Part shown: positions 522-39,877 of the stretch, one piece after another
Numbering within the stretch: the stretch's first letter is position 1
Layout of the letters: each line of letters begins with the position of its first letter
Origin: Vicugna vicugna
Taxonomy: Eukaryota
NCBI GenBank assembly: GCA_013265495.1
Contig: MU059259.1
Span: 558,001-622,000 of the forward strand
Direction of reading: 5' to 3'
DNA length: 64,000 bases
The notes under the pieces: generated by a model
Told to the model about the DNA's origin: nothing
Database searches by the model: none
What the model saw: only the letters and a program-made list of their open reading frames with translations
Position numbers and translations under genes: made by a program

Positions 522-3500
522 CTGGGGGTGGGGTGCAGCTCAGGGACCCCTGCAGAGCGCAGCCTGGTCCCCTTTCCCCCGCCCCCAGCCCACATGGGGG
601 TACTTTCACTTCTCCCCCCCTCCCCAGCACTCTCACTTCTCTGCACAGCCCGCCCGATTTCTAGCAATGTTCCCTGAAGAACTTCCAGCAACGAGTGGGG
701 CAGGGGGGCAGGTGACACATGCGCCCACCTCTTCCTCTTTCTTCTCTGTGGACGTCATTCGTGTTTAGGGGGTTTTAAACATAATACAGGCTCACGATGG
801 AAAGGGTGGACCATTAAGAAAATACAAAGAAGACAATAACCCTCAGCCTAGTCCCTGCTGACCTGCGTGACTGGTCTCCAAGTCCTGCTCCCTGTGCAGA
901 CATCCCGCACGGGTTTACGCCACACGTGCGTTTTACACATTTTGGGTGTGGCTTGATATCAAAAAGGAGATTGTTGACAGCACTGTAAGATTCTTTAAAA
1001 AGAACGCCCCTTGCTTTATCATGCCCACTCTCCACCGGGGGGCATCGAGGTGTGAGAATGAACTTGCAGAGGCACAACGGCCAGACCAGGAGGCTGGCCC
1101 ACGACCTACAGTGACCGGCCCAGGAGGGAGCGACTGCAAGTCAGACTTGTAGGAAGCCAGCCTGTGTCTCCAGCAACAATCCAGGAAGCTAAACCATATC
1201 CCTGTGTCGGTTGACGCCAAACGACCAGGGCTTGATTAATAACAGAACTGCCCTAATTTCTGTGCCTGCTTCCAATGTAGGACCAACCAGAGAAAACCCT
1301 CCTGCTCACCTGCGGGGCCCGCCCCCCAGCTTCCCAAGGCAGATGGCACACCTGTGGCTGCCCTCCTCCGCCTGCCCTGAGGCGGTGCAGGGCCCCTGCT
1401 CCGGCAGCTCTGGCGCATGGCTGCACCCATTTACAGGTGCTGCCCCAGACCTCACCATTGTCCATGGCCCTTAGATAACACCCACACACCAGGCTTTTCC
1501 TGAGTTACTGTTATTCCCACCAGAGAGGTTTCCGGAAGTGGAATCGCTGGGTTAAAGGGGTCTGCATCTAAGGCTGCGGATCGCCCTGCAGATCTCTGCC
1601 GCACCAGCTGTAACTGATTAGAAACGAGCCTAGCAATGGGATGGCAAAATGACGGGAAACAGTAGAGCAGATGCAGCCCTCCCCACGCTAGGATGCTGCC
1701 TCCTACCCATGCCCACGAGAATGCCGCCAGCCAAGGTGCCACTGCTAAAAATGTATTTGCGAGACAAGTCAGGAAGCTTCTATTTTTGTAAAAACAAAAA
1801 TGAAACTACCCAGATACTGAAGAGAGTCTGGTACGTCCAGCAGGAGAAGGTGGACCATGGATTTTGGGGCAGTGGGGTGGGGTGCAGCTGGCAGAGGGAT
1901 AGCCACTTCCTGGGGTTCTCATCTGTCATTGACATCTTGACGGCGGCCTCCCCTTGAGAAGTCATTGCATGGGTGGTGGGGCTGGGAGGCCCTACCTGGT
2001 CCCGCTCGATGGCGACCTCCTCCATCTGCTGCAGGATGGCCTCGATGCGATCCTTGTACATCTTGGAGTCCTTCCGCAGGGCCAAGCACTGCAGCTCGAA
2101 CATTTCCTTCTCCTCCATGCACTGTGGGAGATGGTAGCTAGTCCCCTGCCCTCGGCCCCCATCCTGGCCCGGGTCAGGCCAGTTGGGATGGGATGGGGGA
2201 GGGGGGAAGGGGGAGGAGAGAGGGGGAGGAATTGCTTGAGCCCCGAGGTCCCCACCAGGCCTGAGCTTCACCAAAGGTTGGCCGTGAGCCTGCTGGGTGA
2301 GGAGGCTGGGCCCCTACCTCCAGGAAGCGGGAGTAGGGGGCCGTCGAGCTGAGAGGCCGCCCCACTTCCAGGCATGTGCAGCCCAGTTCCCTCTCTACCT
2401 GCCTGCCCGTTGCGTACCCGGGCACGCAAGGCCTCGGCCTGGCGCAGATCCTTGCGCAGGGAGAAGATGGTGCTGGTCTGCTCCTGGTGGTCCCGCAGCG
2501 CCTGCCGCCAGTCCTCCTCCAGCACCTGGATGTAGGGGCTGCTCTTGTCCGGCTTCCCTTCCTGTGGGCAATGAAGGGAGATGGCGGAGGGGACGCCTGG
2601 CTGGGAGACCCAGGCCTGGCTGCCCTGTGCCCGCCCCACGCCGCCCCGGCTGGGCCCCCACCTGCACGGAGGCCTCCAGCCCCTGCACCCGCGCCTGCAG
2701 CAGCGCCTTCTCCTGCTGCAGCTCCCACAGCAGCTCCTGGCTGGGCCGCTGCTCCATGGCATGCCTGAGCTTCAGCGTGTGCTTGCGCTCCACCGAGCAG
2801 TCGTCCTCTGCCTTCATGAGGCTGTGCTTGAGCCGGTCGATCTGCGGGACCAGCTGTCAGCCAGGACCGCGGGACCCGCCGCCTGGCCCCCACCCCGAGC
2901 AGCCCGGCCGTGAGCAGGGGCGGGCAGGCACCTCCAGCTGCAGGTCACGGTTCCGCATGAGCGCGGCGCCCCTCTCCTCGCTCTGGCGGGCCAGGCGCAT
3001 GGCCAGGTCATAGTTGTCCTCCTTGCAGCGCTGGAGCTCGCGGCTGCCCGCCTCGCAAGCCTCCTTGAGCCGCTGCACGCGCTCCTGGTGCTTGCGCAGC
3101 AGGCTGTCCTTCACCCGCAGCTCCTTGATCAGGTCATCCTTGGAGCTCAGCAGCACTGTCAGGTCCTGCACCTTCTTCTGCAGCTTCATCACCTCGCTCA
3201 TCAGCAGCTGCGTCAGGCCCGACTCCCCGGACGCATCTGTGGACCAGACAGGCATCAGTCGGGGTGCCCCTCGCCTCCCGAGCCTCCACTCGAAGGGTCA
3301 AATCCAGGATGCTGCAGCTCCCCATCGAGGAAAGGAACTGAGCTCTGACTCACTGCTCGGACCTGTTCCCACCCCCTCCCAGGACAGGGCTTCCCTCTTT
3401 GTCTAATTTTGTTATCTTGATTGAGAGGCAACTCAGGGCCAGGAGGGCCTTGCTCCACCAGCTGCTGGGGCCAGCAGGCCCCATCTTGCCAGGGGCAGAT

Positions 3501-4234
3501 GGTCTTCTGGGCCACGAATCAGCCTGTGCACCCCACCTCCCACCTGTTAACCCTCCGGGATGGGAGTGAGGCCAGACAGGGCCCCATGGTGGCACCCTTT
3601 CCCGCGAGGCTCACCTGTTTCCTTTTCATCTGCAATGTATCCGTCAGGGGGCCAGGTGGGAAGGGGCCCACCAGCCCCACCCCTAGGCCGGCCCCACCCC
3701 GTCCCCTTGAGGCTCCCATGCCGCCCCGCCTCCAGTGTCCCCAGGCCAGGTCCCATTCCTCACCGATGATCATGGAGAAGACGCGGGTGGGCTCCTTGCC
3801 TGTGACCCTCTTGTAGAGCTGTGGGTAGTACAGTTCCAGGCTCTCAAGGAAGGCCACGTAGCCCTTGTGGCCAGTCCGCTGCAGGATGTCCAGGAGCACA
3901 CCTGCAAACCAGAGAGGCCCAGCTGAGCCTGAGCGGGTTAGGCAGACAGAGGGACAGGGCTCGGGGGCCGGGAAGTCCCCATTGCCACCCTGCAGTTGGG
4001 GTTGCAGTGCGCTCCAGGGCAGGTGCAGGGCCGGGACCGCCAGCACTGACCCACTTTCCGCTTGCGGATGACCAGGTTGGGGTCGCTGAGCACCTGCTCC
4101 TCATCGTCAGGGTTCAGGACCTTGCACTGCCGCAGGTAGGGGGTGATGCGGGCGGGGTCGATGACCGCGATGAGCTTTACGCGGAAGCCTTCCAGGGCAC
4201 TCCAACACTCGTCCTCGTTCTCGTAGTCGGACAT
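330..4234 (-). CDS. CARD9: CARD9, partial (coding exons 2-8; 3' exons lie beyond the left edge)
   Basis: join(complement 4051-4234, 3764-3901, 2932-3236, 2662-2841, 2418-2561, 1996-2121, 330-521) = 1269 nt, 423 codons, all GT-AG. Starts [37 protein letters not shown] (CARD domain; C10/H73 zinc ligands, K125 and T231 kept), followed by coiled coil. Confidence 0.98.
1996..2121 (-). CDS. CARD9: CARD9 exon 7
   Basis: [12 protein letters not shown]...AIERDQ. Confidence 0.96.
2418..2561 (-). CDS. CARD9: CARD9 exon 6
   Basis: [18 protein letters not shown]...AEALRAR. Confidence 0.96.
2662..2841 (-). CDS. CARD9: CARD9 exon 5
   Basis: [14 protein letters not shown]...GLEASVQ. Confidence 0.96.
2932..3236 (-). 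CDS. CARD9: CARD9 exon 4
   Basis: [13 protein letters not shown]...RNRDLQLE. Confidence 0.97.
3764..3901 (-). CDS. CARD9: CARD9 exon 3
   Basis: [13 protein letters not shown]...VFSMII; tttgcag acceptor, GTGAG donor. Confidence 0.97.
4051..4234 (-). CDS. CARD9: CARD9 exon 2 (ATG at 4234)
   Basis: [10 protein letters not shown]...IRKRKVG; donor GTCAGT at 4050. Confidence 0.97.
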
Positions 4235-8409: not shown

Positions 8410-11400
8410 CTGAAACAAAGTCCAGGCAGAGGGGGACAAAAGTGACCCTCTAGCCAGTACAGGCAGGGGCCAGGGTGGCAGTGGGGAGCAGGGAGGAGCC
8501 TTTGGAACCAGGACAGGCAGCTCCTCAGACTCATCCTGGCTGGGAACGAGCAGCTCTTCAGGTGAGCCAAGGCCCCAGCAGCGGGAGCCACTCCAGGCTG
8601 GGCCTGGTGACAGCGACACACCCAAGGGTGTGACAGAGAAGGATGGGAGAAGCGCTGCCTTACGGAGCCACAAGTGGGCTCTGGCTTTCTGCTGACCCCT
8701 CCCTGACTTGGGGGCTCCAATCCCCTCTGAGCAACCCCCCAATAGCTAGCCTGTCACGGTTCCCCTGAGCAGGGCCAGCAGGGCTTGGGCCAAGGTGGGT
8801 AGGTGCTGGAGGCTGCCCAGGCCGTGGGGCACAGGGAGCCTCTTCCCCTCGGGACCTGGGCTCCTGTTGTGCTTCCACTTTGCTCCAGCCCAGAAGGCAG
8901 CCCTGGGGCTCCTGAGGCAATGGTCTTGGGGAGGGCAGTATGGCCCCTGCCTCCCTATCCTCCTGGTAACACATAGAGGGGAGCCCCAGGCTCAACAGGT
9001 CCAGTGCCACAGACACCCCAAGTGAACAGGAGGGACAGCTCCTGGGGGTTCTCCAGGAGGGTCACTACATACTCCCCAGACAACACTGGCCAAGTCCTGG
9101 GCGACCTCCCTGATTTGGTAGTCGCGAGGTGACCCGGCCGTCCTGCTTGGCCCAGACAACAGGGGCCAGGGGTTCCCTGGTGCACACAGCCCCAGGGGGC
9201 TAGAGGACACCTTCCCATGCATCTGTTATCAGGTTTCTTGTCAGTCAACAGGGACACAATCCCCCTTCTGTAGCTTAGAAGACTTGGCAGACAGAGCCAG
9301 GTTCGGCACCTGGAAGGACTGTGGTGTCTGTGAAGTGCAGGTATCCCTGTGGCCCCCACAGGAGTGTGTGTGTGTATGTGTGTGGGCACAACGCATGTAT
9401 GCATGGCAGGGCGCAGAAACCCACGGCGGCTCCCCAGCTCAAGACGGGGCCGGCGGCCCCAGGCGGGCAGAAGCAATGTCCCTGCTGCAGAGAATCCGCC
9501 CGCCACTGGGCACCTTGGAGCAGCCTCTTCCTCTTCAGAAACCAGCTAGCCAGCCCTCCTGGCCGCGACTTCCACCTGCTCCCACCCGCAGGTGCTTGGG
9601 GTGGCAAGACAGCCACAGGTGGGTGGGGTGCTGTGGGGGCTGCAGCTGCTGCAGGGAGGTGGGGTGAGGGCTCCGCACCCAGGACCACCTACCTGGGCGG
9701 GGCTGGCGTGGACACTGCTCGCCCAGCCCCTCTGCTGCCCACTGTCGTCCTTGTGGACGTCATCGTCGTCACTCTCAGGCTCAGCCCTCATGGCTGCTGA
9801 CAAGGTGGTGGGGACACTGGGCGGGGACAGGGTGGCCAGGAGCGCAGGGAGGGTGAAGGCCGCCAGGAACCGCGCCTTCAGCAGCAGGTGGGCCGGGCTA
9901 TCCTGGAGCCGCTCCCGCGCCTGCTGCAGCGAGGCCTGCAGGGCTCCGGCTGCCCTGCCGGGCACAAGGGCAGCGGCTCGCTGTTCTAGGTCCTTCTTGC
10001 GGAGCAGGAGGCCAGACAGCACCCGCAAGCTGCACAGGGTTGGGGGCTGGTAGGGCAGCCTGCTCCCCAGTGGGGGCACACACACCCCACACCGTCCCCT
10101 CAGCCACTCCCTCACGGCTGCCTCGCTCTCCTGGGAGAGAAGGCCCAGGTCCAGGGCACCCTTCTCAGGCCCAGGCTGAGGCCTCCTGGGCTCCCCGGGC
10201 CCTGGTGTCTCTCCTGGGCCACTGCCACCTGACAGAGGCAGCTGGCTAGACTGGAAGGGCTCTGCTTCAGGGTGGTGAGCCAGCAGCATGGCCTGGGAGA
10301 ATGTCCTGGGCACAGCTGTCTCCCCGGCTACCTGGACCTCTGCGGGGGAGGAGAGTCCCTCGGGGTCCTGGGCCCTGGTGCCGTCCACCTCTGTAGGGCT
10401 TTGGGATGTGGAGGGCCTCCGAAGGGTCAAGAGGTCTGTCCCTGAGGGAGGGTCTGACGCTGTGTCCATGTTGGCTGGGGGCTGCCCAGGGAGTCCAGGG
10501 CCCTGGGCTGCAGGAGGCTCAGTTAGGGAGGGCGGCGGAGTCACCGACAGCCCTCTGGGGTCAGGGGTCCCTGCTGACGTCGGAAGGCCTACCACAGCTG
10601 GCACAGGCACAGGGAGCAGCCCCTGGGCTGTGAGCACCCAGGTGACAGGCAGAGGGGTGCTGGCCCCGTGTGTGCCCAGAGCCGGAATCAGGCTGAGAGG
10701 CTGGGCAGGCAGCTGAGCAGGGCTGGGGGCTGCAGGGAGAAAGGGAGGTGCCTCGGGCAGGCCCTGCTTCCGGGACGTGGCAGGCACCTGAGACTGTCCG
10801 AGGAGGCTCAGGTGGTGGCTCACAGGGCCCTGGCTGGGGCCCAGAACTGGGGCCCTGGATGCAGCTGGGGTCGTTCTGGCTCCCGTGGAGGCTGGGGTGA
10901 GGGCAAAGGCTTGCAGAGACAGGGGTCTCTCATCCGAGGCTGAGGCCCAGGAGCCTGGAGCACTCAGACTGGCCACTGCAGGGCTCCCGGGCCCAGAGAG
11001 CACTGCATTTGACACAGGGGGGCCTTGAGGGGCCAGCGGCTGGAGGACCACGGGTGAGGAGACCAGCACCTGGGGCGGGAGAACCACCCGGCTCTGGGCA
11101 GCCTTCCTGGCTCGGGCCTCCCGCAGCCGCTTCTCCCGAAGCAGCTCAGACACAGTTTTGGGCTTGGGCCGGGGTCCGCTCAGAGCTGGCGGGGGCACCC
11201 GTGGAGTGGGCTTGGCGTGGTGAGGCTGCAGCACTGCACCCTCTTCATGGCTGGCACTCTTCTTTGCAGCTCCGCGAGCTGGCACATTCTGCAAGAGGCA
11301 GCCTGCAGGGAGGATGGAACACATGCTGACAAACCCCAGGTGACTGGCCCAGAAACAGGACTTGCCTCGTGTCCTGGTGGAAGGACCCTCATGGTGGGCA

Positions 11401-14400
11401 GCTGCTGGGAGCGTGGAAGCAGAAGCCTGGCATCTGGGCCAACAGGGGCACATCAGTCTGGCTGCACATTTCCAAATCTCCCGTCCCACAGCACCCCAAG
11501 CTCACAGTGGGCACTGGGCAGCCCAGCCGGGGGCGTTCGGCCAAGGCAGGCACTGAGCAAGGCCCTGTATGTCAGCCCCACTTCTGGAGAATCTTCTAAA
11601 CAAGGTCTGTTGGCCCCACTGCTCTCCCCTCTAGCATCACCTCTCAGACCCCAGACCCTGAGCCTGCCGGTGGGGAGACTGGTGGCCACCAGCAGGAGAG
11701 GCCCCTTGGCAAGAGGGCAGCCCTTCCCCTCCTGGGCCATGGCTGGGGCAGGCGGACTTGCTGTGCTAGGAGTGCCCCCCCAACCCCCGCCAGCCAGGCC
11801 CTCCAGGCGGCCCTCCCTGGCGTGGGATCCAAACAGACCCACCACGAGGGGCCACAGTTGTGCTGCTCAGAGCCAAAATTCAGAGCCTGTGACAGGTATG
11901 GCCTTTTTCCCACTGGACACAAACAACCAAGATAAACGGAGAGACAGACAGACAGTACCTTGGGTGTTCTGGGCACTCGAGGGCATCTGGAAAAGAAGGG
12001 TTAGCACCTCAGGACAGTCCCCAGAGGCCCAGATCCACTTCTCTACCCTCAGAAGACCATCTCTCACTTCTTGCCTGCAGTGAGCACAAGGCTCCAGGTG
12101 CTAGGGCCAGCCTGCCCCCTCCTGATGCAACTCCACCCAAAGGCACCCTCAGGAGAGCTCATCTCAGTGGGGTCAGGGCTGTGTGGACTTCGCAGGGACA
12201 GACAGGGGGCCTGGCTGTTGAGGCAAGAGGGCATGGACTCTGTGGACTAGATGGGGCACCATAGGCTTGTATATTTGGTCCTCTGACTGATCACACCATC
12301 TTGTCATTTTCTCTAGCGCTGACCAGGCTCCCCCTAGCAGAGCCAGGGCCCAACGCAGCAGGTGCTCAGCAGCTCCCGCCCTCTGCCCAGGGGTGGTACA
12401 GCGGGTGGGAGGAACATGCTGTGGGCCAGGTGGGTCTGAGTGCCACTCAGGCCCCGCACCCCTTGGACTTGCAGCATAGCCACTCAGGGCTCCAGGCCCT
12501 CACTGTGAGATGGACAGACACCTCCCAGGAGGGCTGCTGTGGGAGGAGGGGACAGCCTTGGAGCAGGAATGGGCAACAGCTGCTCGCAGGGCCAGCCCCA
12601 GCCTCCATGGGACCCGGAAAGGCCTCCCATCTCCAGAGAGCTGGCCAGCACCTGCTACCCGGCACTAGCTGTGCAGCAGGACGGGGAAGGGTGGCTGGAG
12701 CCCAGTGAGCCCGCGTCCGGCTCCCACGCCCACTTCTCACCTGCAGAAGCTGTGGCGGCAGGCCCCGGGCACCAGCCTGGAGCGGGGTGGGGGCCTGGGC
12801 CTTCCTCTCTCGAACGACCTCCATGCAGCCGGCAGTGTCGATCTGGAACAGCTGAGGATGTGTGTGACACGCTTGATGCCATGTGACAGGAGGCCCTTCG
12901 CCGCCCGTCCTGAGGCCCCCTCCACCCCAACAAGGACCGAGCCGATGAGGCGCTCGTGGTGGGAGCCGCTCTCATGGAGAAGACCCAAAGCCCCTAAGGG
13001 AGTGACCATGCCTGCATGGGTCACGCCCTAACCTGGACGCGGGGACTCAAGGCTGCCACAGTGCTGGCTGCCTTTCCTGCCCTGATTCAGACCATGGGAC
13101 GTCCAGTGCACCTGTCGTGACAGCCTCTTGTCCCCTGAGCTTCCACTTCCACACTGGGGCTCCCCTCCCAGCCCTTCCCCACGGGGTTTAGCTGACATCC
13201 GCAGGAGCACTGCACCGTGGCTGCTCCTCCACCTTAACTCGCCCACTGAGTCACAGGCCACTGAAGAACTTTAGAAAGTTGGGCTTTGATAAGGAAGTGC
13301 CACACCAGGTGGCATCTTACCTGAATAAAGAGGGTAAACACTGGGGTGCTGGCCAGGTGGGCGCCCCGCAGCCGCTGCCTGATGCCATCAGCTAAAGGGA
13401 CAAGGACACATGTGCCAAGTGGCCTCAACTACCAGCCTCCTCTCCCCCACGCCCGAGAGCCCCAGACTGGGTACCAGGCAAGGGGCCCCGAAGAACCCCA
13501 AATCCAGCTGCCGCTACACTCAATCAGAAAACAGGGCAAGGGTCCAGGGGGCAGGCTGGCCCTGACTGGCCCTCAGCACAAATTCGGGGAAAAGCACTCC
13601 TGAGCCCCAAGAGCCCCATCCCCTGGAGAACGTGACCAGCTCTCTGGAACCTGCACGCAGGCGCCCACACATTTCAGATCCCGAGAAGATGCTCGTGTTC
13701 AGGCCTGAATGTGCGGTCAATTCCTGGGCTGACCACGTGTGCTAAGGGGGTCGGGAGAGGCAAATTCCAGACACCCCACAGGTCAACACTGGGCGGGTGG
13801 CCCCTCCTGTTTCTGCCTCGCCCCAACAGAACAGGTGTGACCAGCTGTGTCTGTGGGTGCCCCCCTCCCCCTTCCTCTCCCCTGGCCCTGGGCCCCACAG
13901 GAGGCTCCCGAGGGGAAGGAGCCCTGAGGTAGTACCTTGACTGTGCACTACAGCAGGCCTCAGGGGAGCGCACGGCAGGACGACATCGCCTACCCACGGG
14001 CTCACAGCCATCAGAAGCTGGCGCTCTAGGAGCCTCCTCTGCAGGGCGTGTCTCTGGCGCCGCCGCCTGCTCCCCATGGTCCCCTGCCACAGCGGCTGCA
14101 CCCGGGGCCTGGCCACGCCACTGCCATTGGGGCTGGGCTGCCTCCGCTTCTCCTTCTGCGGGGAGAGAAAGGGACCTGGGCGTTTTGGCCAGGCTCAGCT
14201 CCGGGGCTGCCCAAGCCCCACCCTTACTGTCCCCCCTCCCGCCATGTGCTGGTGGGGTGGGACACTCAGGCTGGGAGCAGGGGATGGGGGACAAGGTGGT
14301 TTGTAGGGACTGGGGTGATCCTGGCGGCCTGGAGTGGTGTGAGCGGCCTCGGGCAGGCCCTTACCAGCACCCGGCAGTGGGCAGCCGTGTTGGTCCTGAG

Positions 14401-15627: not shown

Positions 15628-15670
<43 letters not shown>

Positions 15671-18600
15671 GCCAGGCCCATGGCTGCTGTCCTCACTGCT
15701 GGAGCTCCACTGCACTCTGCGAAGGGGCCGCCGCCGCCGCCGGCCCCCCCGCCGCTGCTTCTGCTGTGGGGGAAGGGCTGGCTGGAGGTTCTGGCCGCCC
15801 AGGGCTCACCGATAGGGACAACGGGCAGGCCAGCCAGCCCTTTGGGGAGAGGCCTCGAGTGGGCACGCCTCCAGGGGGCAGGGGGCTTGGCTGGGCGGTG
15901 CTGGAAGCAACCCTTCCACCCGTTTTGAAGCCAGAGGGTCCCGACCAGGCCAGGTCTCTCTCTGCCCTTGGCCCCATGGAAGAAAACACCCCTTCTCCCT
16001 CTGCCAGCCGCTCTGCCCTCATCCCCCAGTGTGACGCCAGCCCCGCAGGCGACGGGCCTGCTGGCCTGCTTTCAGCGAAGCCTCACCCTGACCATGATCT
16101 TCCACTTGCTCAGGCACTGCGAGCCCGTCCGATGGGGTAGTTCAGAGGCTATTTTTGCCCAGTGACCTACAAGAGCAAACGACACAGAAATCACTTCTTA
16201 CAAACAGGTTTCCTCAGCACAAGTTTATCAGCTTGGAAAAAAGGACTCTTTCCTAAGACGCATTTGTGTTTCCCGTCAGAACGGATCGGTGAGAAGTTGG
16301 GCACCTGGTTCCCGGTGGATACACAGCCCCTCAGGGAGCTCCAGCAACGCACAACCACAAGGAGGAGCCTTGTGAAGTGGCCCGTGTGCGCCTCCTGTGG
16401 CCAGGCGTCTAATCAGGCGTTTCTTTCTTTAAAAAATATTTTATTATTGTGTTATTTTTATTTTGGTGGGAGGGGGAGTTTTATTTAATTAGCTTTACTT
16501 ATTTTTAAAGAAGGTACCAGGGATTGAACCCAGGACCTCATGCATGCTAAGGCACTCTACCACTTGAGCTGTGCCCTCCCCCCACTTGAGCTGTGCCCTC
16601 CCCCCATTGAGCTGTGCCCTCCCCCACTTGAGCTGTGCCCTCCCCCACTTGAGCTGTGCCCTCCCCCCACTTGAGCTGTGCCCTTGCCCCCAGACATTTC
16701 AAATTATTTGGTGTTTCCTTCCAGACAGTTGCTGGTGGGATGGAAACGGGCGCACTGCTTCTACAGGGCAGTCTGATCACCTGTGACAGAAGCCTTACGA
16801 CTCCACATACCCTTGAACCCAGCAATGCCATATCTGGGATTTTTTTGGGGGGGAGATATTGCGAATATAAGCACAGATTTAGCTCTTAAACCCTCAGCTC
16901 ATTCCAGCCCTGTAACCAACAATGCCAACAACTTAAATGTCCATCGATAGAATACTGGCTGAGTAGCCTACAATACTATCACTCAGAGGAATATACCACA
17001 GTTATGGAAAATAACGCTGGAACACAGAATGTGTAAAGACACGGAAAAATACTCGTAGCAGACAACATAACGACAGAATGAAGTAGAAACAGCCGGCTCA
17101 ATTAAACTAAATGGAATGACTCAATCTAGTGAGCTGCCTTTTCCTGGGAAAGCACCAAGCACAGAGAAGGACTGGGCGAGCGCACACCAGCCAGCGGGGC
17201 CGCCTCTGGCGACGAGAGAGGAACTACGTCACTCTCCTTTCCATACATCTCTGCTTCTAAATGTCCTACAATGAATGTGAACTAGCCTGTAAAAGGGAAA
17301 AACGCCACCACGTGCTGAGATGATGAAAAACGAGGCGGAAGAGTTGGTGGCCAGGAAGGCAGCCTGGGATCGGCGCAAACTGCCAACCTCCAGGGGTGTG
17401 TGCAAACCTCCACTGTGAACTCAAAGCTGTCAGGAACCCCCAGAGAGCAAATGTACCAAGAACTTGCTGGAGGTGCCAAGATGGTGGAGAAGGAAGACCC
17501 TAAACTTCCCTCCTCCCACAACACCCCAGAATTACAATTGCTTACAGAGCAATCCTACATGAGAATGATCTTGAGACCTACAGGTTTCCCACGACAGAAG
17601 GCGTGGACAGGGCACCACAGTGAGATGGGGGGGCGGGGGCGTGGTGCAGGCAGGACCCACGCCCCCGGGTCAGCGACCCACAAAGGGAGCGGTGTCACAG
17701 CTGCAGAAGGCTTTCTCCAGGAGCGAGGGCTCTGAGCCCCACATCGGGCTCCCCAGCCCAGCGGGCCCTGCACCAGGAAGATGAGCTCCCAGAACGTCTG
17801 GGTTTGAAAGCCACAAGGTTTACATACATTCGGGAGAGCCAGGGGCCATGGGAAACAGACTCCGCTCTTGGACGGCACACATAATCTCATGTGCTCTAAG
17901 AGGCCAGCACAGAGGCATCAGCTTGGAAGGAGCCTGGGTCAGAAATGCTTGCCAATCACAGAGAGCCTCCCAGGAGGATGGAGATGTGGAGCCTCTGGGG
18001 ATGGAGATGCGGCGGCAGCCGTCTGGAGCTCAGTCCACTGCAGTAACACCAGAGCTGGCGGCCCTATCAGCCCGGGAACGCGGCCGCCCACCAGCTGCAG
18101 GCAGCAGCCCGCACCAACCCTCCTCCAACCCCGGGTGTGCAGCCAACCATGGGGGAAGCCTACCCTGCCCTCCAGCAGGTCCACGGCCACTGCACGAGGC
18201 ATGGCCTTGCAGCCAACTGGACCAAGGCCCAGCCCCACCTGCTGCCACCCCTACAGTTGATCCCACCACAGCAGAAGGGCCCACACAGCCCACACTGGGG
18301 GCACCCCCAGAACATATAGCTCTTGTGACCAGAGGAGATTATGCTGCTGGCCTCACTGGCCACCTTCTGCCTAAGGCCACTTCTTCATGATCGGGAAATG
18401 TAACTGACCTGCCTGACAGTAAACACACAGAATTAGGCAAAGTGAAACTGACAGTAACGTGTTGATAGCGGGGACTTTAACAGCCAACTTACAACAATGG
18501 ACAGATCATCCGGACAAAAAGTCAGTAAGGAAGCACTGACCTTAAATGACATACAAGACCATACAGAATTCATAGACATTCACAGAACATTTCATCCCCA

Positions 18601-24600: not shown

Positions 24601-27600
24601 TTTCTTTTTAAACAGCTTGGCAAGTTTAGTTTGGTTTTCTGCAACCATGTGCTTAGCCAAAAAAAGTGAGATTAAAACCGGAAATTTTTCAGATCACACT
24701 CTCATGTCACAAGCCAACAAAATTCAAACTAAGAATAACAAAAGGGATTCCAAGAAACCCCACCATCCGAAAACGAGAAACACATTCCTACACGGGCTAA
24801 ATCCAAAAAGGCAACACAAACGGGAGTCACAGCCATCCCAAAACTTGCAAAAGGAAGGCATTTCACACCAGGCTGTCCTCAAAACAGGAGGCCTTAACGC
24901 CTCTACTGTTAGGGAGCGGGGCCAGTGGAGAACTGAGTCCTCGCCTTAGATGGGAAAGACAAGAAACCCAAAAGACACCAGGAAAAGCGTCCTTCTCAAA
25001 CACCCCGCGGACTCCTCCTGAGCCTAACGGGGGGGGGGGGCCGAGGAGGGGAAGGGATTCAGACGGACTCAGAGACTGGGCTTTCCGGACAGATGGAGCA
25101 TGAATGCGCTCTCAGGGAGGCAGCGGGGTCTGAGAGCAGGAAGCGTCTGAAGCATCAGCCCGGGGGCAGGGAGGGCTTACCCTCTCCGAGGGCCACAGCC
25201 TTGAGAGCGGCAAGAGGAGGAAACCCGTTGCTCTAAGGGAAAAGCCTGGGCCATGGTGTGACACGCGGCCCATGGAGACCCCAGACCCACCCAGCCTCCC
25301 AGCTGTGGAGCCGACGCTGCCCGTGGGGTCCGGGCCTCACCCCCAGCTCCTCAGCGATCTTCTGCCAGTCCAGGTGGCCGTGCCTGGCCGCGATGGCTTT
25401 CAGCTGCTCGACCTCCTGCCCCGTCCACTCCTGCTTGTTGATGCTCGGGTGCTCACAGTTCTGCCAGAACTTGCGGATCTCTTCTGCACTGCGACCTCCT
25501 TCAAACTGCACCAACACAGAGACCCGGGCTGCAGGGGGTGTCGCTCTGGCAGCCGCGGAGAGGTGGGATCTCTAGTCAGGATGCCTGGATTCGCGCAGCC
25601 GAAATGCAGAGGGGGCTCCAACCTCAAAGCCAAAGCCTCCACAGCCATCCACCTCAGAAGAGGCGCCTTGTTCCAGCAGGGAAGGCCCTGCAGGGCCACT
25701 CCATGTTGCTGGATGAGCACTCAACCAGGGAGGGTCACGGCAGGCCCGGTGGCCACACAGGTCTACGACCTTACCGCCTGCAGCTGACCCTGCCGACGCT
25801 GACCCGCCCCTCAGCTACCAGGACAGGCCACCCCCAACTTACGTTAACGTTGGAGATTTTCTCCCAGTCGTGGCTGTCCAGCCTGCTCCCCAGCAAGGCC
25901 TCCTCTGGGAGCTGACTGGAAAGGGCGGCAAGGGCACAGGGTCACGCCTGGCCTCCTGCCGCCCTCCCCGGCTGACACCCGCTGGCGACCTGGCTTACTT
26001 GATGTCCTGGATCTCCTTCTCGGCCTCCCTGGCCTGCTTTTCCAGGACCTGCCTCTCGGTCTCACTTGTGACCCTGCTCTGCTTCTGGTGCAAGTACTCG
26101 AGCCTGAAAGGCAGAGCAGAGGCACCACGGTCACTGATGATGCTGGTTTGCTCTGCGGGAGTCCCCACGGCTGGCTCGGCTTTCACTCGGACCCAGGGTG
26201 CGCCCCCTGGGGCCCGGCTCGATGCTGGCGCTGCCTCTGCAGACACACCGCTCAGTCTCTCCGAACCACCCCCAGAGAAAGCAGCAGCACCCCTCTGGTG
26301 TCGGGACGGCAAGGGCAGCAACGTGTGTGCTGATACAGATGTTGTATCACTGCTGCCCCACATCTCAGAGCTCGGTGTCCCACTGCCGGCCCCGCACCCC
26401 ACATATAGGGAGGTGCTTCGCAGGCATCCTGGCCCTAATGCCCAGCGACAAGGCCGGAAACCGTCTCTTAGGACTGCAGTCACCCACGTGAGCACGTAAT
26501 CGCTTCCAGGACAGCCCAAGGAGCGTCCCAGCCATCACCGCGACAAACCCCGGCGCCACGCGGAGCCCCGGCCTGACTACAGGTGCTGAGACGTGGTTCC
26601 AAGACATCATCCTGTCAGCCCATACGTGCTGCAGATCTTGTGAGCGGTCCTCCTTTCCCGAGGTGGAAACGGAGGCCCAGGCCAGAGACACTGCCAGGTC
26701 ACACAGCCAACGTGGCCACTCAGCCTGAGTGGTGCCGGAGTATGTGCGCCAGTTTCCTTAGCTGCGGCCAGAACCGGGAGCAGCAGGTAGGATGCGGTCT
26801 GGCTCCCAGAGCCCCCGCACGCTTGACCTCAGGGTTCGGCGGCCTCCTCTGGGAGAGAGTTCAGAAACCAGAGCCTCTCCCGTGGCAGCAGAGGGACCCG
26901 GCAGAGAAGGGGGCACGGCTGAACGGGGCCTCTGCCCGTCACGAGCTGCCAGCCTGGGCGCCCTGCTCACCGGGCAGCCGTGTGTCCAGGCCCTGCTCTC
27001 AGACTTACTTCAGTAACTTGGGCTGAAGCAGACGCTGCAGGCGGTCGCTCACCACTGACTTTCGGAGCAGGGCCTTTTCCCAGTTTTTCCCTGAGGAGAC
27101 ACAAGGATGTCAAAGCAGCCCCTGGCCCCGCACTCAGGCCCCGTGCACTTCAGCTGAATCCTCTTGGGACCCTCGAGGTCTATCCAGGCTGCAGTGAGGA
27201 AGTGGCTGAGTGGCTGGCACCTGGGGATGCGGGCTGAGCGGTGAGCCAGGCCACAGGCACTGGGCCCTCCATCCAGCGAGCACAGCCCCACCCGGGCCTG
27301 GCACCAGCTACAAGCTCACACGGCAGGGCCTCCTGGGGCCTCAAGTTCAGGAGTTGGGAGGGAGACCAGAGAGGGCGCCGTAGTGGGTGGTCCGAGCCTG
27401 TCCCTCATGACAGCATCCTGAGGATCCCACCCAGCATGGGAAAGCAAGGCTCCAAGTAACCAGTTCTGGTGCTCGAGACCGAAGGTGCCTGTGACGCTGC
27501 TGGAGTCTCTCGTCACGCCCGGGGAGAGGCAGGGCACGGTGAAGGCCCCCCGCGTCCGAGTGTGGCAGGCACTGAGGACTGGGCGGGGCTCTTACACTTG

Positions 27601-30600
27601 GTCACTAGGAGCTGCTCGAAAGCCTTGATGCCCTGGGCAGCCTTCTCCCGCGTGTCTTTGTTGGCAGGAGGTCCCTGTCAGAGAACGGAGTGCCACAGTG
27701 TGGACAGAACCCAAGGGTGCTCCCCTGAAGGGCCCAGCATGTCCCTCTGGGGTCCCTCCTAAGACCCCTTCCCCACAGCCTCCTCCAGCAACCCAGCCAC
27801 GTGTGAGGCCAGGCCCTGGACGCCTGGACCTAGAACCGTGCCTTGTGAGTAGCTCTGGGATACAACCCAGTGGGCGTAGGATGGGTTCAGTGACCCCACG
27901 AGGGTGGACAAGGAGGAGAGGAATGCTGTTAGCAACATCAAGACCCCCACTACCAGAACTCAGCAGGCCCACCACGCTGCCCCGCCCACGGCACCACGTC
28001 TCAAGGAGCTGCCCCAGCGGGTTTATCAGAGAAGGGAGATCAACTGCCACCTTTGGGGGCGGGTTGGAGGGCACACCCTGACTTTCACCACTGGACCCAG
28101 GGGAGGCTTTTAATTTAGAAAGGTTGGGAAACACTGTCCTGAAGAATCCAAGGGAATTCACAACAGCCACAGAAGGCTGTGGGGACAAGAGCCCCTTCCC
28201 ACAGAGCCTGGCTGAAACCTCACCGAAGGGCAGGGCCCCGGCCACTCACCACGCCGGTCACCTTGTCCTTGAAGTAGGGCTTCATAAAGTGCCCAATGTA
28301 CAGATTTGGGGGCAGGCTCCTGCCGTCCTTCACCTTGGGGCCTTTGGACCCCGCCAGGTCCCACATGACCTCCTCCTGTGGCAGACACAAGGGCCCATCT
28401 GTGGGCCAGGCAGCAGCAACTCTCCCGGCAGAGAAGGGAGTAGACCTGACCCAGAGCCCAGCCCTGGTCCTGGGAGGCCCAGCTGCGGGGGCTCTGGGAG
28501 CCAGACCGCATCCTACCTGCTGCTCCCGGTTCTGGGCCAGCAGCAGGCTGACCTCTGCCAGCTTCTCCTGGATGACCTCCTGGTAGACCATGTTCAGCTG
28601 CAGACAGGTCTCCGGGTCCTCAGGGAGAGCTTTCTCTTTGGGGTCGTCTTCATCATTGCTGGCTTCACCCCACCTCTCTTCTTCCTGGTTACAAACAGGA
28701 AACCGCAGCTAAGGAAACTGGCGCACATACTCCGGCACCCTCGTGGCCCCAGGGGTGTGAAGGGCCCTGAGCAGGCTCTGGCTGTGGCCCGGCGTGGTCC
28801 ACAGAGTGCGTGCACACTCCCAGCTGAAGACAACTCTACTTAAATTTAACTTCTAGGAGTGTACTTCAGGTGTGGAAGCGTGAGAAAGTGAGCAGTTTTC
28901 ATTCTCCACAATAAAACCGTCTGTAAGGCTTGGACTTTAGAGCAGGCTCGTGCCATGTTCCTCGCTGGCAAATGCAGTGAACAAGAACATGTGCAAAGGC
29001 CACTGCAGCACCAGTGACACTAAAGACGGAGACAAACGCCCACCACAAGGCGATGCAGCTAAAACCCTGGAACTATAGTGAACCTGCGTCAGGGGACCAC
29101 CCAGCTAGTAAGAACAGGGAGCAATTCTATACCTACTGACTTGATAGAAAAACAAAAAGCCAACTGTAACAGTTTTCTGGAAGAACATAAAACTACAAAA
29201 CAAACAAGCAATAGTTAAACAGTATGTAGCGCGACCCAGAGCTGACTTGCCAGGCGCTGCCCTAGGCGCTGGCATGTGTGAACTGGCTTGTGCTGTAACT
29301 GCCCCTCCTGTTCAGGCTGGGAACCAGAGGCACAGAGAGGTGGACTACCAGGGGCAGGACCCAGGCAGCCCAGCAGCCCAGCAGCCCTTCCACGTCACAT
29401 GTCACACAAGACACAGCAGCCAGCAGCTCAGACAAGAACAGAGGCCAAACAACAAGCTGCCACCAGTGGCGGTTCTGGGGACCACCTTATTTTTGATGAT
29501 ACCTGGTGACGTCTCATCTTTACTAACAGGTGGGCAATATTTTTACAATGCGAAACACCCAGCTGGCTTCAAAGCACCCCCTTCCCAGACCCACCGGGAG
29601 GGTGGTGTGTCTGCCACAGCAGAAGTTACCGAGATCAGTGGAGCAGCAGCATCCGAGTCCTCATCAGGCAGTGAATCTGTAGGAACACAAGCAGACCATG
29701 TTGGTGACTGGCGATGGGGCGCCATGGGGGCCGGGGAGACCAAGCAGCTGCAGCTTCAAGGGGCTGGAGCCAGGCGGGGCGGGTGGGTGAGCGGGATGAA
29801 AGACCACAGGGAGACTTGTTTTGTGGGCCCCCCCGCCCCCCCAAGTGCCAGTGGCTGATCGCTGCTCACTGGCTGTGTGGAGCAGGTACTGCACCACGGG
29901 CAGGGTCAGCCAGAAGGAGAAGACACCAGCCTGACAAAAGTGCTCTCAGGCCTGCAGGGAACAGTGACCACTGGGACAATCAGTAGGAGACAGTTCTGTC
30001 CTGGGGGAACTGGAGCTTGTTATGGGGGAGAGCGGACAGACAGAGGCCCTGATATCAGGTGGAAAAAAGGCCTTGGTGTATTGGGAACTATGAGAAGTTC
30101 AGCCTCAGAGCTACCCCTGGAACCTGCAGAGAGGTGAACAGGTTGGGGGACCCTGGACAGCTCAGCCACTGCAGGCTGGCCTCCAGTCAGAGATGTGGTG
30201 CAGGTCACTCAGGGCCTGGGGAGCACTGGCAGGCGGGGGGCAGAATATGAGCCTTGGCACCAGGGGTCTCAGCTGTGACGCCTGTTCAACGAGGGGTGGA
30301 GGACAGAGCTGAACCCCGGGACCTTCCAATTCCTGTGGCAAGCAGTGTGGCCCTCCTCCCAGGACAGCCTGATGCAGATGGCCACTCTGGGGCAGGAAGC
30401 CCACGCATGGCTGGCAGGTCCAGGGGCTAACACGGGAGGAATGGTAACAAGCTGTCCAGTGGAGTAAAGGCAGAGGCTGGTTTTGCGGAGAGAGCAGCAC
30501 GGTGGCCTACTGGGCTGACAGGGCCCATGGCAGACACAGCTGTTCTAATTGTAGTGCGCGGGAGCTCACCTGCATCAGAGTCTGAATCAAGACTCGACTC

Positions 30601-38774: not shown

Positions 38775-39877
38775 NNNNNNNNNNNNNNNNNNNNNNNNNN
38801 NNNNNNNNNNNNNNNNNNNNNNNNNNNNNNNNNNNNNNNNNNNNNNTTTTTTTTTTTTTTTTTTTACATGGGCTCTCTATTGCAGTGGTTCTCATAGCCT
38901 GGGGAACTTTCAAAGCACAAGCACCTGGATTCCTGCCCCTAGAGATGGTCTGACTTTCATGGGCCCTAGCATGTGTATTTCTGGCAAAGCTCTCAATAGG
39001 TCTGATGCCCAGTGGGGCAGGTGCATATATCCTCCTGCATCTTGTGGTACCTCCTGAATGCCCTTGTGGGTTGCCATGGCCTCTCAGACCCTCACATAAC
39101 TACTTGAACACTCCCTGGACACCCTGGACACGAGGCGGTGTAGCTGCTTGGGGAGAATCAGGATGAACTAAGGCTGCCCACTGCCCAGCTGCAGTGACCA
39201 GAGGATCGCTGCAGCTGGTTTCCAAGCCTTGCCTACTGGATGAAGGCTCCCTTGCCCTGAAAGAACGAGGTGGTTTCCCTTGCTCCCACTGCGCATACCT
39301 CCACTCCAGTATTTACCATCCTGTACTAGAGCTGTCTGGCTGAGGGGGATCCAAGATCAGACTGTGAGCTCCTGGGGGCAGGACCCCTACCACTTGCGTC
39401 CTGTACTCCCAGCGCCCGGCACACGGTGGTGCTAGTGCTTATCACTAGGTCAAGGGGTGAGTTCAGGCTGCAGCACAGGTACCTACAGGTACTGCCGGCA
39501 CCGGGGGTCCCTGAGGCTGGTCTCTCACCTGTGTCTCCCACGGAAGCTAGCACCGGACTGGGCACATAGCACATAAACGTCGGCCGAATGCCGAAGAAGT
39601 GGGACTCCAGGTCCCTGCCTTGGGGGCGCTCACAGTCTAGCTGGGGGAGACAAGACCGGCGCTCATAGAACGCTGGAGCTGTAACAACAACAAGAGCGAC
39701 TTCACCGCGCGCCGGCGCTGCGCGGGCGCTCTGCGTGCCCGCCTCACCTGGACCTCAGCACGGCCACCGGGCCGCGGACCCCGGCCCTTGCCCGCTCCGC
39801 CGCTCACCGTCCGAAATGACGAGGCTCCGGGCCCGGGATAGCGGGGTGACGCCCGGGCGGCGCGCGTAGCCCGCCAT
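34316..39877 (-). CDS. ENTR1: Endosome-associated trafficking regulator 1 (SDCCAG3), 10 exons, 1299 nt, 432 aa
   Basis: Join closes in frame; MAGYARRPGVTPLSRARSL..., LEEANPFSFKEFLK motif, C-terminal coiled coil, ends LKSIDRISEIKDEKES*. Confidence 0.96.
34995..35134 (-). CDS. ENTR1: ENTR1 exon 9
   Basis: AQVSNFKRENEALR...NNAHASIK. Confidence 0.96.
35136..35161. repeat. (TG)8 microsatellite plus G9 run at the ENTR1 exon 9 acceptor
   Basis: tgtgtgtgtgtgtgtgtggggggggg read directly from the sequence. Confidence 0.9.
35523..35585 (-). CDS. ENTR1: ENTR1 exon 8
   Basis: KRAVKAENHVMKLKQEISLLQ. Confidence 0.96.
35954..36065 (-). CDS. ENTR1: ENTR1 exon 7
   Basis: VRTLERKLEAKMIKEESDYHDLE...LELMT; AAG acceptor. 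Confidence 0.95.
36505..36578 (-). CDS. ENTR1: ENTR1 exon 6
   Basis: LKDENSKLRRKLTEVQSFSETQTEM. Confidence 0.96.
37125..37532 (-). CDS. ENTR1: ENTR1 exon 5
   Basis: EATRHSLGLDH...YQQPFFEDP...LQISYEA. Confidence 0.96.
37789..37904 (-). CDS. ENTR1: ENTR1 exon 4
   Basis: DDKLEDLEEANPFSFKEFLKTKNL...IYSK. Confidence 0.96.
38620..38688 (-). CDS. ENTR1: ENTR1 exon 3
   Basis: DFGYGKGKCTKQGPSGAQNTHFG. Confidence 0.92.
38745..38865. other. Assembly gap (72 N, 38775-38846) flanked by poly-T
   Basis: T30, N72, T19 in ENTR1 intron 2. Confidence 0.95.
38881..39025. mobile_element. hAT-Charlie DNA transposon fossil (MER5A-like)
   Basis: Begins CAGTGGTTCTC, with 'tctgact...gggccc...gcatgtgtattt...ctgatgc' as in MER5. 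Confidence 0.6.
39529..39678 (-). CDS. ENTR1: ENTR1 exon 2 (150-nt frame-neutral cassette)
   Basis: APAFYERRSCLPQLDCERP...VLASVGDT. Confidence 0.9.
39808..39877 (-). CDS. ENTR1: ENTR1 exon 1
   Basis: MAGYARRPGVTPLSRARSLVISD. Confidence 0.95.

Follow-up and report, generated by a model that had tools for sequence, protein, structure and literature searches.

A two-piece inverted copy of splice-signal sequence in an intron of SNAPC4 in the Lamini lineage: a probable locally templated insertion

The seventh intron of the SNAPC4 gene of Vicugna vicugna contains an 89-nt element made of two perfect inverted copies of sequence that lies beside and within an upstream exon of the same gene. We have analyzed this element in a window of 64,000 nt (assembly GCA_013265495.1, contig MU059259.1, positions 558,001 to 622,000), and all coordinates given here are those of the window. 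The interpretation that we favor, with a probability of about 75%, is that this is a genuine germline insertion in two parts that was templated locally, arose on the branch leading to llamas and alpacas (Lamini), has a small net effect, and is not a selected device. From sequence comparison the kind of event falls within a known mutational class, and its origin is well supported.

We identify the gene as SNAPC4 (SNAP190), encoded on the minus strand. Exons of the minus-strand gene match Pfam Myb domains, a 647-aa open reading frame (ORF) at 9546-11489 in the large exon retrieves SNAPC4 proteins, and the spliced translation of the mapped exons is identical to the annotated alpaca SNAPC4 protein from residue 60 onward. 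The SNAPC4 locus is 99.7% identical to the alpaca gene. The exon of interest is the third coding exon, which counts as exon 4, the number used hereafter, only given a single exon in the 5' untranslated region. It is preceded by the acceptor ...AACCAG and followed by the donor GTAGGA, and it is identical in the alpaca SNAPC4 isoforms. The features that make up the element and its source are as follows.

28517 to 28684, minus strand: third coding exon (exon 4), 168 nt, in frame, residues 60-115, placed from splice sites and translation.
28703 to 28739, minus strand: source of arm A, in intron 3, 19-55 nt upstream of the acceptor.
28484 to 28535, minus strand: source of arm B, comprising the exon end CCAGAACCGGGAGCAGCAG (coding for AQNREQQ), the 5' splice site and the first 33 nt of intron 4.
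28536 to 28702, minus strand: skipped part of the source, 167 nt, being 18 nt of intron 3 and 149 nt of exon.
28481 to 28488: one half of an 8-bp inverted repeat, AGCTGCGG, with its partner CCGCAGCT at 28703-28710, from direct reading of the sequence.
26731 to 26767, plus strand: copy of arm A, the reverse complement of 28703-28739 at 37 of 37 positions.
26768 to 26819, plus strand: copy of arm B, the reverse complement of 28484-28535 at 52 of 52 positions.
26729 to 26730, plus strand: left-junction bases GT, which differ from the ancestral site and do not match the source exactly in a three-way comparison of Camelus, derived and source sequences.
26104 to 27008, minus strand: intron 7, the host of the element, 905 nt.

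The element lies 189 nt past the donor of exon 7 and 627 nt before the acceptor of exon 8. Its two copies are fused without a gap, leaving out 28536-28702, and ungapped homology to the source ceases outside both of its outer ends. The final two nucleotides (CA) of the arm B copy could derive equally from the ancestral site. Read in the sense of the pre-mRNA, the arm A copy is antisense to the branch-point zone of exon 4, while the arm B copy runs antisense to 19 nt at the end of the exon and to 33 nt of intron, in which the GTAGGA donor is counted. Apart from low-complexity sequence, arms A and B are the sole perfect repeats of at least 20 nt in the window in either orientation; the remaining perfect repeats of that length are homopolymer, a GCT microsatellite and a 21-22-nt tandem repeat. 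We estimate that chance would give about 1e-13 inverted 37-mer matches in 64 kb. Given this value and the uniqueness of the arms within the window, a chance origin of the repeat is not an issue. Of the 8-bp inverted repeat, the half AGCTGCGG falls at the exit point of the copying and the half CCGCAGCT at its internal switch point, a coincidence for which we estimate a chance probability of around 1e-4. Comparison of orthologues shows that this inverted repeat is also kept in Camelus. The identity of the gene, the two fused perfect inverted copies with 167 nt omitted between their sources, and the 8-bp inverted repeat at 28481 and 28703 had all been put forward in a preliminary description of the window, and each is borne out here.

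To place the element in time we compared the SNAPC4 loci of four camelids, located through annotated proteins using the longest isoforms. The Vicugna pacos assembly GCA_048564905.1 is 99.70% identical to the window, with 72 substitutions and 12 indels over 24.3 kb, and has the identical 89 nt, junctions and source arms at the same site. The three Camelus species C. bactrianus, C. dromedarius and C. ferus, which are approximately 96.3% identical to the window over the locus, do not have the element, and their site reads CTCAGCCTGA-CCCAGCTCTCAC-ACGCTTGACC. The corresponding site of Orcinus orca has a related CCCAGCTCTCAC-like sequence with about 12 nt in common with Camelus and no insert, and the flank of the element is 72% conserved to orca over 319 nt. 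Since both Camelus and orca are free of the insert, the camel state is ancestral and the insertion is derived. The alignment of orthologues suggested in the preliminary description thus finds the element in alpaca and in neither Camelus nor orca, and places the insertion on the Lamini branch, after the split of camels from llamas. Moreover, the arm A copy carries an A where Camelus, orca and banteng have T. The copy therefore holds a derived base of the llama branch, and the copying must postdate that substitution.

The junctions were read with the camel sequence as the ancestral state. The left junction is CCTGA/GT/GGTGCC, where the source has CACGAG/GGTGCC. This can be read either as two untemplated bases GT, or as a GA microhomology followed by one templated G and one untemplated T. 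At the right junction the source, CCCCCGCA/GCTGG, has CA in common with the ancestral site, CTCTCACA/CGCTT. Arms A and B meet bluntly at the internal junction, and the end of arm A (GCTGCGG) is only imperfectly like the sequence just before arm B (GCTGCTGGC). Between 11 and 13 ancestral bases were lost on insertion of a patch of 89-91 nt, giving a net gain of 78 nt. Neither a target-site duplication nor poly(A) was found at the insertion junctions, and taken together with the microhomology or untemplated bases this excludes retrotransposition. The templates lie 1.7 and 1.9 kb away in SNAPC4 and were copied in inverted orientation. Longer homology linking the donor region to the ancestral site was also sought. 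The top-scoring local alignment proved only marginal, equalled in 8 of 300 shuffles and some 20-40 nt off the junction, and we do not rely on it. A splice-like origin of the 167-nt skip was considered and rejected, as its ends are not GT-AG on either strand.

These features would be explained if a polymerase engaged at a replication fork or in the repair of a break left its own template and copied 37 nt beside the upstream exon. It would then have jumped 167 nt, copied a further 52 nt and returned to the original template. Such a process would be of the microhomology-mediated template switching type, either fork stalling and template switching or microhomology-mediated break-induced replication (FoSTeS/MMBIR), or polymerase-theta end-joining. 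The 8-bp inverted repeat probably aided the switching. That it falls at both the switch point and the exit point suggests guidance of the switches by a hairpin, formed either by the template or by the nascent strand.

Events of related kinds are known. Templated insertions attributed to FoSTeS/MMBIR (PMC8421209) also have a nearby template copied in inverted orientation, several switches, microhomologies and a small deletion of the recipient. That was a tumour event, whereas the SNAPC4 element is germline and shared within a lineage by two haplotypes. It differs further in being bipartite and 89 nt long, with a template 1.7-1.9 kb off and an imperfect internal microhomology. Class 2 templated sequence insertion polymorphisms have junction features resembling those of non-homologous end-joining (PMC5110952). 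Like the SNAPC4 element they have no target-site duplication or poly(A), and they have a microdeletion, microhomology, untemplated bases and a transcribed donor. Their donors are usually distant and thought to be RNA-derived, whereas SNAPC4 supplied its own donor, and the involvement of RNA as an intermediate is only a candidate reading. Template switches in great apes operate at distances of tens to hundreds of bases and substitute sequence where it stands. As in the SNAPC4 insertion, copying from the opposite strand yields reverse-complement sequence with pairing potential in one event. Those switches are short-range (PMC7954356), whereas the SNAPC4 event spans almost 2 kb and joins two donor stretches.

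We turn now to the RNA. Predicted duplex energies of the element with its sources are -82.8 kcal/mol for arm A and -127.7 kcal/mol for arm B. The same arms paired with 278 other 89-nt windows of the downstream pre-mRNA give median values of -27 and -40 kcal/mol respectively. When the camel arms are paired with the orthologous camel site the energies are -28.5 and -45.3 kcal/mol, i.e. at the background level, and the strong predicted pairing is new to the Lamini lineage. When a 2151-nt stretch reaching from intron 3 as far as the element is folded, the minimum-energy structure pairs each of the 89 nt with its source, and barring the element from pairing in this fold carries a cost of 152 kcal/mol (ddG = -152 kcal/mol). 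Thus the clamp geometry is sound as modeled, comprising an almost unbroken helix of 89 bp, one strand of which has a bulge of 167 nt. The simultaneous pairing of both arms with the exon bulged out had been anticipated in the preliminary description. There is neither compensatory change nor conservation of the pairing, which is confined to Lamini and identical in the two haplotypes, leaving no covariation to read.

Three further exons are located between the source and the copy.

28375-28250, minus strand: exon 5, 126 nt.
27674-27596, minus strand: exon 6, 79 nt.
27090-27009, minus strand: exon 7, 82 nt.

Exons 5-7 therefore sum to 126 + 79 + 82 = 287 nt, and exons 4-7 to 455 nt. These totals, together with the 168-nt exon, the position of arm A 19-55 nt upstream of it and the division of arm B into 19 nt of exon and 33 nt of intron, agree with the geometry proposed earlier. 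Intron 3 is 945 nt and intron 4 is 141 nt in length. The donor of exon 4 (28517-28684), GTAGGA, departs from the consensus, and its polypyrimidine tract is short. Judged by the yUnAy consensus, the best branch-point-like motif appears to be CCUUAGC, which falls within arm A (intron 3 -55 to -19) and has its A at -26. At position 28697 (intron 3 -13 on the minus strand) the window has a T in the polypyrimidine tract (tttccTgttt), where alpaca and the three camels have C. This T, located within the 18 nt that separate arm A from the exon, would make the tract slightly stronger.

SNAPC4 is an essential gene, encoding a transcription factor of snRNA genes, and the exon is retained in all four annotated alpaca SNAPC4 isoforms, an annotation that lists well-supported isoforms and no minor ones. 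In the interpretation that we favor, a locally templated insertion of little consequence, the effect on RNA would be a by-product. The pre-mRNA would gain perfect antisense of 37 + 52 bp to the branch-point zone and 5' splice site of exon 4, and the duplex would be expected to form in a fraction of the transcripts. Some double-stranded RNA would be expected, and possibly low-level exon skipping, back-splicing or adenosine-to-inosine (A-to-I) editing. Because the gene is essential and its annotated transcripts keep the exon, the net effect is most likely small, and we do not expect the element to be a selected regulatory device. Camelus annotations hold N-terminally truncated SNAPC4 isoforms that start at a Met of exon 5 (MWDLAG..., MKPYFK...), and so forms without the exon-4 region are modeled in species that do not have the element.

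Four points weigh against this interpretation. First, the sequence fits replication-based, break-repair and RNA-templated synthesis alike. Second, there is no exact microhomology at the internal junction, merely the imperfect match GCTGC..GG. Third, the presence of the element rests on two assembled haplotypes, possibly of one animal, and this does not show fixation in Lamini. Fourth, the small effect is deduced from the essentiality of the gene and from an annotation restricted to well-supported isoforms.

In the first alternative the element is a functional antisense clamp. It would cause in-frame skipping of the 168-nt exon with loss of part of the rod module of SNAP190, and circular RNAs (circRNAs) of exons 4-7 or 5-7 might arise instead or in addition. 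This is compatible with origin by templated insertion and differs only in the size of the effect. Certain properties of the RNA would lend themselves to it. The very strong duplexes new to the lineage dominate the predicted fold, the exon has the non-consensus donor and short polypyrimidine tract noted above, and long-range RNA structures and pairings are known to affect splicing (PMC8052449, PMC7797038). The exon is also of consequence for the protein. Residues 1-143 of SNAP190 form, with SNAP43 and SNAP19, a rod module that is essential to keeping mini-SNAPc stable (PMC9652321). The residues encoded by exon 4 (60-115) fall inside this region, in keeping with the earlier proposal that the exon belongs to an N-terminal segment involved in SNAPc assembly, and skipping would plausibly weaken SNAPc.

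Yet the exon is included in all of the annotated alpaca isoforms, and strong skipping would be harmful given that the gene is essential. With an intron 4 of 141 nt, and an element that is transcribed some 1.7 kb after the exon, splicing may commit before the clamp can form. A masked branch point would be an obstacle to linear splicing and also to back-splicing onto that acceptor. Nor is there any sign of constraint, since zero substitutions is the neutral prediction for this span of time. We therefore consider a functional clamp to be unlikely. In a broader form, this single mutation might measurably change SNAPC4 RNA processing in Lamini in vivo, giving SNAP190 with a skipped exon, circRNAs of exons 4-7 or 5-7, or recoding of the AQNREQQ end by ADAR. 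This too we consider unlikely. A perfect 52-bp duplex over the end of a coding exon would be a substrate for A-to-I editing, and editing would hence provide a direct read-out of pairing in vivo.

Each of these potential outcomes has a counterpart among established systems. Complementarity over 30-40 nt is reported to be enough for back-splicing (cited in PMC7371899). At 37 nt, between intron 3 and intron 7, arm A reaches the 30-40-nt complementarity of circRNA-promoting repeats; the 52-nt complementarity of arm B is part exon and part intron 4. The intronic inverted repeats that promote back-splicing (Alu or MIR pairs; PMC7371899) are similar in that complements longer than 30-40 nt flank exons, and the arm A pair brackets exons 4-7. 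The SNAPC4 arms differ from them in that they are not a transposon pair, they cover the branch-point zone and the exon end with its donor, and they may block splicing rather than help it; circRNA formation is here only a candidate outcome. In the long-range structures that control splicing, such as the pairs of conserved complementary regions (PCCRs) and those of ATE1 (PMC8052449, PMC7797038), an intronic element likewise pairs with distant splice-site regions and could loop an exon out. Those pairings are conserved and backed by covariation or mutagenesis, whereas that of SNAPC4 is young, lineage-specific and predicted. The third outcome, editing, has its own precedent. The ADAR editing-site complementary sequence, for example that of the GRIA2 Q/R site, is an intronic complement to the end of a coding exon and its adjoining intron. 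The SNAPC4 element resembles it in being a perfect intronic complement to an exon end plus the adjoining intron, but it is located three exons downstream and not in the adjacent intron, and editing is a candidate only.

In the minus-strand (gene) sense the stretch 26768-26800 presents a pyrimidine-rich run ending in CAG (CCUACCUGCUGCUCCCGGUUCUGGCCGCAG). This resembles a 3' splice site and is new in intron 7. No good donor is seen downstream of it, and so creation of a pseudoexon from this acceptor-like run seems unlikely.

A second alternative concerns the nature of the template. Nascent SNAPC4 pre-mRNA might have served as the template, with the patch produced by reverse transcription at a double-strand break associated with transcription, either as a class 2 templated insertion or by a repair polymerase with reverse-transcriptase activity, with the 167-nt skip arising from a jump across RNA structure. 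The strand that was synthesized is complementary to the pre-mRNA, the donor is within the same transcription unit, and pairing of the two halves of the 8-bp inverted repeat could close a stem in the RNA where the switches took place. Class 2 insertions, thought to be RNA-derived, have the same junction features (PMC5110952). The orientation does not discriminate between the two templates, however, because the strand that was made would pair with the pre-mRNA and with the coding DNA strand alike. Moreover, the donor holds unspliced intron on both sides and is just 1.7-1.9 kb off, so that local switching on DNA fits equally well, and there is no feature specific to RNA, the ends of the skip not being GT-AG and hence not those of a splice. 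Templating by RNA is thus rather improbable in our estimation.

The age of the insertion bears on the remaining explanations. Its presence in both haplotypes, which are 0.30% apart (approximately 8% of the divergence between camel and llama), indicates that it predates their common ancestor. A rough Poisson estimate from the local divergence places it within the most recent two-thirds of the llama branch. Over the time since the haplotypes separated we estimate that about 0.3-0.5 differences between copy and source would be expected, and none is observed in the 89 nt of either haplotype. With so low an expectation perfect identity is unremarkable, and it gives no sign of extreme youth, gene conversion or selection. 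The absence of mismatches had been taken in the preliminary description to imply a very recent template switch. That the copy is derived and templated is upheld, but an element common to haplotypes 0.30% apart cannot be called very recent. Could it conversely be an old copy, with identity maintained by gene conversion or by selection for pairing? The complete identity of copy and source in both haplotypes might be read in this way, but the small number of differences expected leaves no need for maintenance. In addition, the arms, at 37 and 52 bp, are short by the standards of gene conversion in mammals, and the derived llama-branch substitution in the copy shows that it is not ancient. We regard this explanation as very improbable. 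Lastly, the very perfection of the copy might suggest an artefact of assembly or sequencing, such as a chimeric read or a polishing error, but this can be dismissed with still greater assurance, because an independent Vicugna pacos assembly, whose haplotype is set apart by 72 sites in 24 kb, has the same element and junctions (the check for a chimera called for in the preliminary description), and the difference from Camelus is a clean indel with microhomology typical of real mutations.

As a locally templated insertion the element is unusually clean. It is inverted and in two pieces, and its donor, its ancestral site and each of its three junctions are legible, making it useful for studying how template switching shapes mammalian germlines. 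It also illustrates that a single mutational step can create 89 bp of antisense against the splice signals of an exon. Camels without the element and llamas and alpacas with it provide a natural comparison for the effects of a young long-range duplex on exon inclusion, back-splicing and editing. Should RNA processing prove to be altered, this would amount to a dated natural 'before and after' experiment on the rewiring of splicing by a new long-range structure.

Some searches were made around the element. In the preliminary description the host site was a candidate MIR remnant. A search by nhmmer with the ancestral site returned only orthologues, and neither it nor a pattern search nor blastn brought up other copies of a family in the sequences searched. 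A protein search with a 147-aa ORF that spans the element gave no match, and nor did an exact scan of metagenome contigs for its internal junction. No Rfam family was found at or near the element, and elsewhere there were two sub-threshold chance matches. There is a weak mir-483-like match at 25914-25972 on the minus strand, just downstream of exon 8, scoring 26.5 bits against a gathering threshold of 60 (E = 0.14), and this is most likely due to chance.

A few observations were made elsewhere in the window. An intron of SNAPC4 contains a 21-22-nt tandem repeat with CCACTTGAGCTGTGCCCTCCCC-like units at 16560-16684, and a (GCT)n run occurs at 15635-15669 in the serine-rich coding region of the gene. 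Minus-strand ORFs at 1700-4100 resemble exons of what we take to be CARD9, the expected downstream neighbor of SNAPC4. A 30-nt poly-T run from 38745 adjoins the sole stretch of N in the window (38775-38846).

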